NCBI GenBank assembly: GCA_039096225.1
Contig: JBBPEB010000015.1
Span: 1,488,001-1,552,000 of the forward strand
Source: Blastocystis sp. Blastoise
Taxonomy: Eukaryota; Protista; Bigyra: Opalinata
DNA length: 64,000 nt
Direction: 5' to 3'
Position numbers and translations under genes: made by a program. Below, piece by piece: positions 38,601 to 42,300 of this stretch. The notes under the pieces were generated by a model that saw only the letters and a program-made list of their open reading frames with translations, had not been told where the DNA came from and searched no databases. Within the stretch, counting starts at the first letter, position 1. Every line of letters begins with the position of its first letter.

Positions 38601-39090
38601 TGAAAATACTTTTGAGTTTCATACATCTTGCTTTTGTCTTAACAACAAGGGAGACAAAGGTATATTATTGTCTAATAAAATAATAAAAATATTTTTATTG
38701 TTTCGTCTTTAGATAATAATAACTACAAAAACACCCTTGAGAAAACATTTTTTAATAGTAAGTTATTTACTATTAATTGTGAAGGTATGTTTTGATGTGA
38801 AAACAACCTAAAATATATATAGGAACTACAGACTCAGAAATAACAAATAAATTTATATTTAAAGACAACACAACTCTTTTTGCAAATAAAAACAGATTTT
38901 CAACATGTCCAACAAATCAAGGTAAATATTTTTATAATTTAAATTCTATTATGACTTGATAGTTACTTTAAATAATAATAATCAGGAAAATGAAAGTGAC
39001 GAGGATCTCTCAAGTCCTCCTTATTATGATGAAAGGGTTTCACCTCCTACTTCTCCTGTTTATCCTGTTTCTTCTCCTGAATATTATTAA
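35699..39090 (+). CDS. Predicted micro-exon gene inside the Helitron: 28 exons, all introns phase 1, ~388 aa with (DSGSKLLTQ)x19; function unknown; start uncertain
   Basis: Exons 35699-35768, 19 x 27 nt (35942-37662), 37704-37733, 37791-37826, 37927-37989, 38031-38114, 38588-38659, 38713-38784, 38823-38921, 38963-39090 (TAA). Every internal exon length is a multiple of 3 and AG/GT-flanked, except micro-exon 9, which has a GA donor. The spliced frame is open. Confidence 0.65.
35942..37662 (+). repeat. Array of 19 copies of the 27-nt unit ATTCAGGATCAAAGCTATTGACTCAAG separated by ~40-140 nt AT-microsatellite introns
   Basis: Each unit is preceded by TAG and followed by GT (one GA). Variants encode [45 protein letters not shown] and YSGSKPLTE. 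Confidence 0.9.
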
Positions 39091-39381
39091 GGAGTTTTTT
39101 AAATTTTTTTTTGTTTTTGCTTATAAATATTTTGTTGTTTTGTATTATTTTATTTCTTTCTTTAATTATTTATTCTTTTATATTATATTTTGTTTAGTTA
39201 AATATTTTATTTTTAAATTATTAAAAAAGTAAAATATTTTATATATATATGTTTACAAATATCTATATTGTTTAATTAATTAAATCTTATATATAATACT
39301 ATAGGAAACAAAAGAAAGCGATTTAATTCTCTTAAAAGAAGAGATATATTTGGAAATTTTATTAATTCACAAAATTCAAAA

Positions 39382-42300
39382 ATGAAAAATAATCAAGTAT
39401 TAAACGAAAATCAAAATGATTTTAATCAACACAATTCGTTATTAAATAACAATAATTCTTTAAATAATGAAGAAATAGTAACTGAACAACACCCAATACA
39501 ACTAAACAATATAGAAACTATATCTTCTTCTTCTTCTATTCCAAGTGTTACTTCAACTCAAAGTAATAATAATAATCTAATTGAAGCATCAATTAATGAA
39601 ACAAATTTTATTGAATCAGATTTAAATAATAATACAAATTTAAATAATGGAATTATATATGAAACTTTAATAAATGAAACAGATTTTATTGAAACTGACA
39701 TAAATAATAATGAAAATATATCTCAATCAATAGTTGATGATAGTTTTAATTCCACTTTTGTTTTTGAAAATAATGAAACAAATAATAATACACAACCTAC
39801 TATATTAAATAATCCTATAACTCCTTTACATAATCAACACAATAATGATATACTTTCAGATAATAATAATAGTATCAATAATAATCATATTCCATCTATA
39901 CATAATACACCAAATTCTAATACAAATAATCAAATAGTATCTCCTTCTACTTCTCTCATTATAACACCTCCTAGATTATCTCCTCTTGATTCAAGATTAA
40001 TTAGTTCTTCTTCTTCTTCTCATAATAATAATAATAATTCTATTATTCCTCCTCTGCCAAGATCATCGATATTAGATGTATTAAATTATTATCAAATATC
40101 TCCTATTCAAAATCCTAATAATAATAATTTATTATCAACAAATATAAATAATCATAGAAGAAGAATTAGTTTTGATTCTTCTACTTCAGATGATGATACA
40201 AGTTCAGATAATGATTTCACACCTATTATTCCTCCTAATACTACTAATAATCCTCTTCTACAAATAGAACCAATAAACACTACAAATAATAACGATATAG
40301 ATATAGATAATCAAAATGAAAATAATAATGAAGAAAATAATAACAATATTCCAATTGTTATAAGATTTGAAAACTGTGAAGCATGTATTAAATTAAGTAT
40401 GCTTAATATTATATCATTTTTATAATTCTTTCTTTATGATAATAAAACTATTATTATATTATGTATAGGAAATGGAGATCAAATAATAGAAGAGAATGAA
40501 AGAGATATTCAAGGAAATAACAAATATGAATATTATAATATAGGTAAAATGAATCATGTTTGTATTCATTGTGAAGCTCTTCATTTTGAAGCAGAAAAAA
40601 CAAACTTTTATATCACAAAAAATTCTACATATAAAAAATACATTAATTTAATTAATGATTCAAGAATACAATTTGAATACTATGAAGGAGATCATGATTA
40701 TATCATTACAAGAAATTCAAATTATACAATGTGTTGTAATAATGGGAAAGTGAAAGTAGAATCACCTATAAATCTTCCAAATGAATTATTAAATCAATTA
40801 ATGAGTCAAACACCAAATAATAAATTATTTAGAAATGAGATAAGAAGATATAATAATGCTTTTGCTTTTGCTTCTATGTCATGTTCTAATGTAGTAACAA
40901 GAATGAATGGTCCAGGACCATATTTTTATAGAGTTCATGGTAATGTATATCATTCTATGAGTGATTTATATCCTTCTGATAATTCTCCTCCTTCTTTTAA
41001 TCAAATATATATTTATGATGAAGAAGAAGCTCTTCATATTCGAAATGGAAATAGTATGTTTTCAGAATTATCTTCTGATTTATTATTAAGTATTGATTCT
41101 ATGATAAGAAATAATAATAAAATATATGAATCTTTTAAAACATTACATGAACAAGTAACAGAATCAAGAAGAATAAATAATACTACTTATTCACAAGTAA
41201 ATTTAAAATTACAATTTAAAATAAGTAATTATGATGATAGAAGAAGATTTAATGCTCCTACTACAACAAATGAAATAGCTATGATTATACCAAAACAAAA
41301 TGATGAAGGTTTACCAAATATTAATCTTTCATGTTATCCAAGAAGAAGAAGAAATGATAATAATGAAAATGAAAATGAAAATAATAATAATAATATATCA
41401 GAACAACAAATAACAAATCTTAGTTATAATAATCCTTTTTGTGATCCTTTAATATATCCATTAATGTTTCCTTATGGATTACCATTATGGAGTTTAGAAT
41501 CTACTTCTAATATTATACGTAATTCTGAATTACATTTAAATCGTCAAAATAATAATAATAATAATAGAAATATTTCTACAAGAACAACAACTAATAATAA
41601 TAATAATGAGAATGAAATAATAGAAGAAGTAGAAAATGAATTAAATAATAGAAATAATTATAGAATAAATAATAATCATACAGAGAATAATGATAGTAAT
41701 GGAGATGATTCAAAATCGATGAGAATTATTCCAATTTTTAGAAATAGATCAGAAAGAGGATTTCCATTAGATATTTTAGGAAATGAATTTTATACTATAC
41801 CTACTATTTCATTAAGAGAATTTTATTCTTATTTATTATATACAAGACATCCTAATCATAAGAATTATTTATTATTATTTGAAAAATTATTATTACAATT
41901 TATGGTTGATGCAGCTACAAAAATAGAATATTCAAGATTATTATTTATAGCAAATAATCAAACAAAATTAAGATCAGAGAAATATTCTGTATTTAGAGAT
42001 ACAGTGAATGAGATGATACGAAATGGATTTAGTGATGAATATATAAGAAGTAGAATGGGAAAAGCAGTTATTATTCCATCAAGTTTTGTAGGTGGTCCTC
42101 GATATATGAAGAATTCTTACTTAGAAACAATGGCTATTGTAAGAGCTTATGGTAAACCAGATTTATTTATAACCATGACTTGCAATCCAAATTGGCCAGA
42201 AATCTTAGAATCATTAGAAGAAGGTCAACAACCTTGGATGAGACCTGATATAGTAGATAGAGTATTTTATATAAAATTGAAAATCTTAACTCATTTGATA

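Follow-up and report, generated by a model that had tools for sequence, protein, structure and literature searches.

In Drosophila, regulated splicing of the third intron of the P element decides between the transposase and a 66-kDa repressor. In maize En/Spm (CACTA), TnpA and TnpD are produced by alternative splicing of one pre-mRNA, and the transposase open reading frames (ORFs) lie in the first intron. For Helitrons, which are rolling-circle transposons, the control of the production of RepHel is essentially unknown, and our literature search found no paper linking RepHel to alternative splicing or to isoform control by splicing. Here we describe an autonomous Helitron in a 64,000-nt stretch of the genome of Blastocystis sp. 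Blastoise (contig JBBPEB010000015.1, here C4, positions 1488001–1552000; this whole stretch is called the window, and coordinates refer to it unless stated otherwise). Its RepHel very probably depends on the exons of a gene located upstream in the same element, which would be joined to it via a splice acceptor at 39304. The element is a concrete, testable handle on RepHel control.

Like the P element, this Helitron could give, from one transcription unit and by a single splice choice, either the full transposase or a truncated protein with the same N-terminus. However, the P element retains an intron, whereas the Helitron would choose a last exon, either a proximal one that bears a stop or a distal one; the shared N-terminus has no DNA-binding domain recognised by Pfam, and RepHel combines an HUH nuclease with a helicase instead of being an RNase-H-fold enzyme. 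In a textbook comparison with En/Spm, a single promoter would likewise yield an abundant accessory protein or a large transposase product with shared 5' exons, but the superfamily and the enzyme are different and the RepHel exons are located downstream of the last exon of the accessory gene. With canonical autonomous Helitrons (e.g. Helraiser, and those with plant and fungal RepHel) the element shares its two enzymatic domains (Rep HUH and PIF1 helicase), the Cys-rich motif at the N-terminus and the 3' hairpin with CTAG after it; it departs from them in that RepHel lacks a start codon of its own in most copies and is preceded, within the element, by a gene of 25–27 symmetric phase-1 exons. This gene resembles the micro-exon genes (MEGs) of Schistosoma in its runs of very short symmetric exons of 3n length, which can be skipped in frame and vary in copy number. 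Unlike the MEGs, it is transposon-borne, is joined to a transposase and shows no secretion signal or sign of host interaction, and its splicing is predicted from sequence and GenBank models.

The earlier note on this stretch had found the RepHel frame open upstream of the methionine codon at 39382, up to a TATAG acceptor, and this is confirmed by our analysis: the frame is open to 39280 (an in-frame TAA is at 39277–39279), the acceptor reads aatactatag/GAAACAAAAGAAAGCG (the slash marks the splice boundary; AG at 39303–39304), and the peptide leading to the methionine is (G)NKRKRFNSLKRRDIFGNFINSQNSK-M. As the exon begins with two bases that complete a split codon, the intron before 39305 is of phase 1, and this phase is indeed common to the acceptor, to all donors of the upstream gene and to the RepHel intron at 40397–40468.

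According to the genome paper, Blastoise is strain Rus-B, isolated from a Russian tortoise, with 33 contigs, 33.3 Mb and 23.1% GC; Helitrons are not discussed there, and BioProject PRJNA1084774 is named for the poly(A) RNA-seq of the strain (PMC10690189). In the assembly (33.3 Mb, ~21% GC) we identified at least 15 genomic copies of the region 37700–40500 (copies other than the window are labelled L003, L007, L012 etc., and GenBank proteins P0001 etc.). Five are of the window type (the window itself, a near-identical duplicate 48 kb away and three copies at ~95% identity), six are of the L007 type (86–94%) and four are of the L012 type, whose junction region is only ~72% identical. All 15 copies keep the acceptor, the stop exon with its TAA and a GTA donor (CAAG/GTAAAT or TCAG/GTATGT). 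The ATG at 39382 is present in 5/15 copies, all of them of the window type; the alignment and the per-copy table give AGG at this position in the L007 type and AAG in the L012 type. ATG-less copies on contigs C34, C28, C10 and C13 possess unbroken ORFs of 1,991–1,992 codons counted from the acceptor, and those on C28 and C10 contain no methionine at all in the entire 368-codon first exon. A run of 363 codons free of stops has a probability of ~1e-12. Among the ATG-less copies dN/dS is 0.29–0.47 in the Met-less first exon and 0.16–0.38 in the second (Nei–Gojobori method, with a possible bias in a genome of ~21% GC, which counts against our interpretation). The first RepHel exon is open from acceptor to donor in each of the eight copies fetched in full, with dN/dS of 0.24–0.61. 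Because these long ORFs are under selection and each ATG-less lineage has near-identical copies on different contigs, the lineages have been kept as coding despite lacking their own start codon, and the start must come from upstream. We therefore consider it highly probable that RepHel depends on upstream exons via the 39304 acceptor.

Could the ATG-less copies be dead passengers, mobilised in trans by the ATG-bearing ones, with long frames that merely reflect their youth and no splicing to upstream exons? Each ATG-less lineage consists of copies on different contigs that are 99–99.9% identical, which implies that they are young. On the other hand, the lineages are separated from one another by dS of 0.03–0.08, yet all have ~1,990 open codons and dN/dS of 0.16–0.47. 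Moreover, copies without the ATG occur in two subfamilies with junction regions only ~72% identical, as well as in a RepHel family with ~39% identity (see below). This explanation seems to us very improbable.

The acceptor also separates two regions with different patterns of change. The spacer 39091–39304 contains stops in all frames, is 68% identical between families and has ten indel runs, many of which are not multiples of 3; the segment 39305–39381 is 83% identical between families, has no indels, differs by synonymous changes (AGA/CGA, AAG/AAA, GGA/GGG) and keeps the basic KRK..KRR cluster. The sequence TACTATAG/G is invariant in 15/15 copies. Judging from these alignments, the AG at 39304 is a conserved boundary at which coding conservation begins. 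We also considered a separate small ATG exon for RepHel in 39091–39304, but the only ATG there (39248) is followed by no phase-1 GT donor and is not conserved in other copies.

Which donor is joined to this acceptor? The 38921-type donor and the 39305-type acceptor are the only pair in which both sites are canonical (GTA in the case of the donor) and conserved in every copy. The codon formed at the skip junction is Gly (GGA or GGG) in 15/15 copies, and the length of the penultimate exon is always 3n. All 36 intron donors of the family are GTA, with the 38921 donor scoring 11.3 against a family median of 9.8, while each of the five GTs within the stop exon belongs to a GTG, GTC or GTT, with scores of -2 to -7, compared with 5.4–11.3 for the family donors. 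Two internal phase-1 donors in the stop exon (A/GTGACG and A/GTCCTC) were evaluated and judged unlikely, as their scores are poor and the second alone is conserved. Any upstream donor would also hold the frame, because every upstream exon is phase-1 symmetric; the 38921–39305 pairing would be the most economical solution, not the sole one. As a single model, this junction with the stop exon as the alternative appears to us the best, and we lean, by a small degree, towards accepting it.

The exons were joined by script only, in order to count codons, stops and substitutions. Splicing 38921 to 39305 and adding 39305–40396 and 40469–45321 gives 2,318 codons without an internal stop, in good agreement with the ~2,300 aa predicted earlier. 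Inclusion of 38963–39090 gives 379 codons without a Rep or helicase domain (Pfam), as anticipated for a short product lacking catalytic domains. In silico, the two models share their first 337 codons. The stop exon itself is open to a conserved TAA (..YY-stop) in 15/15 copies, and between families it shows synonymous or conservative changes and indels in multiples of 3, which indicates that the short product is under protein-level conservation up to its stop.

We propose the following mechanism. The RepHel coding sequence would not be self-contained, its first exon starting at the phase-1 acceptor 39304/39305, and its start codon would be supplied by the upstream element-borne gene (ATG 35699), in which all exons are phase-1 and frame-symmetric. 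If the donor at 38921 is spliced to 38963–39090, the stop codon would be reached and a 379-aa accessory protein made; if the stop exon is skipped and 38921 is spliced to 39305, the product would be a fusion of ~2,318 aa, comprising the repeat-rich N-terminus and RepHel. The two acceptors would compete and thereby determine the ratio of the products, which probably depends on 3'-end formation after 39090 as well. We infer the use of the 38921–39305 junction, the origin of both products from one promoter and a modulation of transposition by the short product; that the latter regulates transposition with a repressor logic like that of the P element is speculation.

The earlier note had read these features as a splice switch between transposase and truncated product, and this holds in part: the frame that crosses the 39304 acceptor, the intact ATG-less copies and the conserved canonical pairing speak for it, but the GenBank fusions of the family use other junctions and the window-type copies are annotated as two genes. 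These and several further observations weigh against the proposed mechanism. The 38921–39305 junction is a prediction from sequence comparison. In the window taken by itself, 25 and 34 stop-free codons have P = 0.15 and 0.075, respectively (at a stop-triplet frequency of 0.073 in the non-coding DNA of the element), the phase match has a 1-in-3 chance, and the acceptor scores just 1.3 on the weight matrix of the family introns. This matrix was dropped as evidence for acceptors, since it is overfitted to TA-microsatellite introns. According to the alignments, the feature is beyond chance only through its conservation across copies and families.

In ATG-less copies the GenBank models do fuse the upstream gene to RepHel (P0001, 2,088 aa; P0012, 2,336 aa; P0019, 2,258 aa; P0018, 2,102 aa), but the junction in all four, ...SPVYP/RRDIF... 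(GenBank junctions were inferred from protein sequences, not from exon coordinates), corresponds to a donor CCT/GTTTCT in the stop exon and an acceptor TTAAG/AGA of the L007 type, equivalent to a junction of 39066 with 39337. The L012-type models P0002 and P0022 read ...TSPI-W-IKR..., i.e. a donor T/GTCCTT with the conserved acceptor. The fusion might be real and yet proceed via these junctions, in which case the transcript would retain the greater part of the stop exon and splice from a donor inside it, just before the stop. That one junction is common to four models and the other to two argues for this possibility, and so does the annotation procedure (Braker3, StringTie and Mikado with poly(A) RNA-seq), which is said to be tuned towards RNA-supported introns (PMC10690189). 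However, each internal GT is absent from the other family (GTT TCT reads TTA TCT, and T/GT reads T/AT), and neither donor has the +3 A found in all 36 family donors. The TTAAG acceptor is confined to the L007 type and would turn 39305–39336 into intron, although this segment shows in-frame conservation, contains no indels and has undergone synonymous changes. For other RepHel copies the same annotation starts at ATGs inside neighbouring Helitron termini; these starts are evidently guesses by the predictor, which means that parts of the GenBank models are ab initio guesses. The in-exon junctions are probable gene-predictor solutions, and their being the true route to the fusion is, in our opinion, distinctly unlikely.

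The remaining points against the mechanism concern the window subfamily, in which the two genes could be independent, with a RepHel promoter in 39091–39381, translation from ATG 39382 and the open frame upstream of it a relic of an ancestral spliced form. The ATG of the window copy lies in a good context and is shared by 5/5 window-type copies. In those aligned (the window, L003 and L004) a 16-nt deletion at 39288–39289, next to the acceptor, removes ATATATAAAACTAATA, including the branch-point-like ACTAAT; it is seen in none of the aligned ATG-less copies. It appears from the alignment that the own start codon, whether gained or retained, travels with a weakened intron end. In GenBank the window-type copies are represented by two genes, a short one (P0021) and a RepHel starting with MKNNQ (P0016, P0017, P0011, P0003). 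P0021 (WA158_006929) is the short product, ends with ...SPEYY and, by locus tag, directly precedes the RepHel model WA158_006930, which begins with MKNNQ; P0016 has 1,955 aa, equal to the codon count of the window from ATG 39382. The 25 open codons upstream of this ATG are, as mentioned above, not significant alone. On the other side, all five window-type copies have a fully intact acceptor, with its phase, and KRKR..KRR peptide, the ten ATG-less copies are left unexplained, and neither the L003-type copies nor the L012 family have the promoter candidate TATAAATA at 39121. Independent genes would also be compatible with additional fused transcripts. All in all, we regard this arrangement as unlikely.

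A comparison of the window with the L007 type reveals 98–100% identity upstream of 39304 (38568–39304), dS of 0.14 in the first RepHel exon (compared over 39335–40396) and dS of 0.02 in the second (40469–45321). This pattern marks the first exon of RepHel as a mosaic patch and suggests that Helitron lineages have recombined at the acceptor or close to it. A parsimony case for ATG 39382 being derived was dropped for this reason, and the question of derived versus ancestral ATG is not rootable, which is a further point against the proposed splicing mechanism. In the window subfamily, RepHel may in addition be translated independently, from a first exon that carries ATG 39382 and is derived or recombinant.

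Returning to the splicing of upstream exons to RepHel, the same layout is found in a distant RepHel family, ~39% identical at the amino acid level, on the minus strand of C4 at contig positions 1403536–1413000 (L035, L036, L037), with further copies L038–L048 and at least 20 copies altogether. An ATG exon and phase-1 'GSS' micro-exons are followed by a stop exon that is short and conserved (cacag/ATAATAGCTTTCT...), then by a long interval (~0.85 kb in the C4 copy, 1.45 kb in L039) and a TATATAG/GT acceptor. In 12/12 copies the phase-1 acceptor opens the RepHel frame, which continues with 64–75 Met-less codons. In the GenBank models P0023, P0025, P0026, P0028 and P0034, the RepHel sequence from this acceptor follows the last micro-exon immediately (...SNKVVG/SNKDKINN...), i.e. 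they are of the skip type; in L039, the single copy examined for this, the junction spans 1.45 kb. The same layout in this family indicates that the architecture predates the split of the two families. A more general version of our proposal, which we put forward as tentative and rather doubtful, is that at least two deeply diverged Helitron families of tortoise-clade Blastocystis have a start-codon-less transposase that is made only by bypassing a stop-bearing last exon and carries a combinatorially variable N-terminus, so that the arrangement would act both as a splice/polyadenylation dosage switch and as a generator of N-terminal diversity. If confirmed, the splicing proposed above would be the first case described of a rolling-circle transposon controlled by a splice switch. 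It would also account for the association of a micro-exon gene with RepHel in several families, and ~15–30 GenBank gene models that are split, fused at doubtful junctions or begun in neighbouring repeats would be corrected. The same polymorphism recurs at the RepHel N-terminus of another family, ~38% identical and located on other contigs, where P0004 starts with MNVLQNN.. and P0006 reads ..IINVLQNN.., with the frame continuing for ~560 aa upstream.

Table 1. Features of the Helitron in the window (positions of the 64,000-nt stretch).
Feature	Position	Strand	Remarks
Autonomous Helitron with both genes	33074–45601	+	Ends approximate; shared 5' boundary and 3' hairpin
First exon of the upstream gene (ATG start, phase-1 donor)	35699–35768	+	Read directly; N-terminus of GenBank models P0001 and P0012
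Micro-exon array: eighteen phase-1 exons of 27 nt (units DSGSKLLTQ) and a further unit whose donor is GA	35942–37662	+	Exon chain found by script
Six more phase-1 exons	37704–37733, 37791–37826, 37927–37989, 38031–38114, 38588–38659, 38713–38784	+	Protein-level conservation in the L012-type family
Penultimate exon, donor CAAG/GTAAAT	38823–38921	+	Proposed branch point of the two products
Proximal last exon with stop	38963–39090	+	TAA at 39088–39090; would give the 379-aa product
Spacer	39091–39304	+	3' flank of the short product, or distal part of a 383-nt intron in the skip form; ends in the acceptor AATACTATAG
First coding exon of RepHel	39305–40396	+	Starts with (G)NKRKRFNSLKRRD; Asn-rich; ends with the RFENCEACIKL motif
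ATG of the window subfamily	39382–39384	+	Annotated start of the window-type RepHel (1,955 aa)
RepHel intron	40397–40468	+	Phase 1, 72 nt, GTATGC...TATAG
Second exon of RepHel, with Rep (HUH) and PIF1 helicase domains	40469–45321	+	Pfam

The 5' boundary of the element, at 33073–33076 (ctgaTTTCTTATAT), is common to copies on C24, C34, C28 and C23, its exact first base being approximate. At the 3' end, a hairpin GCATCGGC-GAAG-GCCGATGC followed by CACCCGCTAG/T (CTAG/T) was read directly at 45573–45601, and homology among several copies stops at 45606–45632. This agrees with what is expected of a Helitron, a 3' terminal hairpin followed by CTRR and no terminal inverted repeats. The upstream gene lies inside the element, since the shared 5' boundary and the 3' hairpin with CTAG flank it, and a genome search found its 3' exons only within the 15 Helitron copies. 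The domains of RepHel (Table 1) were identified by Pfam: Helitron_like_N (PF14214, E = 1.9e-57, residues 425–614 of the ORF 40549–45318) for the Rep/HUH part, and PIF1 (PF05970, E = 8.9e-61) and Pif1_2B (PF21530, E = 2.4e-17) for the C-terminal PIF1-type SF1B helicase. The codon at the junction of the RepHel intron is AGA (R), which matches the GenBank proteins (...ACIKLRNG...).

The upstream gene has a micro-exon architecture, with 25 internal exons of 27–99 nt, all running from phase 1 to phase 1 and bounded by AG/..../GTA; all 26 donors of the exon chain are of phase 1. ATG 35699 is likely the start codon for both products, and a diverged homologue of exon 1, MECPLLSLLSQYNQE, is present in an L012-type copy. 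The array exons are bounded by canonical splice sites (AG/.../GTA) and are open in frame. The number of the 27-nt units varies among copies (12, 19 and 22 in the GenBank models), and in the diverged family the micro-exons have 24–30 nt. The penultimate exon, of 99 or 105 nt, is open in phase 1 in 15/15 copies and carries the block in which the upstream protein is conserved most strongly (DSE...). Searches with the upstream protein gave nothing above noise in Pfam and no usable match in the ESM Atlas.

The array introns, including 37830–37920, consist of (TA)n and (TATTA)n microsatellites and are very unequal in length, with the 27-nt length of the exons constant. The symmetric exons left out differ from one GenBank model to another: 38713–38784 is missing from P0001, P0012 and P0019 and kept in P0018 and P0021, and the equivalent of 38588–38659 is missing from P0002 and P0022. 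These omissions could be either real skipping or predictor noise.

Beyond the RepHel gene, two Helitron 3' ends (a GC-rich hairpin and CTAG/T) lie in tandem at 45573–45601 and 45781–45829, with a (TATAATATA)n tract between them. The second belongs to a family that is repeated several times in the window, and some GenBank models of RepHel begin at an ATG within a terminus of this type (MQPRSGAVR...). Finally, a 72-nt minus-strand repeat encoding MLYPIELCFN.KLTPRKFRGVV is found at 16489–16560, 19654–19725, 28813–28884, 45918–45989, 49081–49152, 52262–52333 and 61513–61584. It serves as the first exon in GenBank models of three different RepHel families (P0019, P0006, P0027, P0033) and is probably a repeat-borne ATG chosen by the gene predictor.

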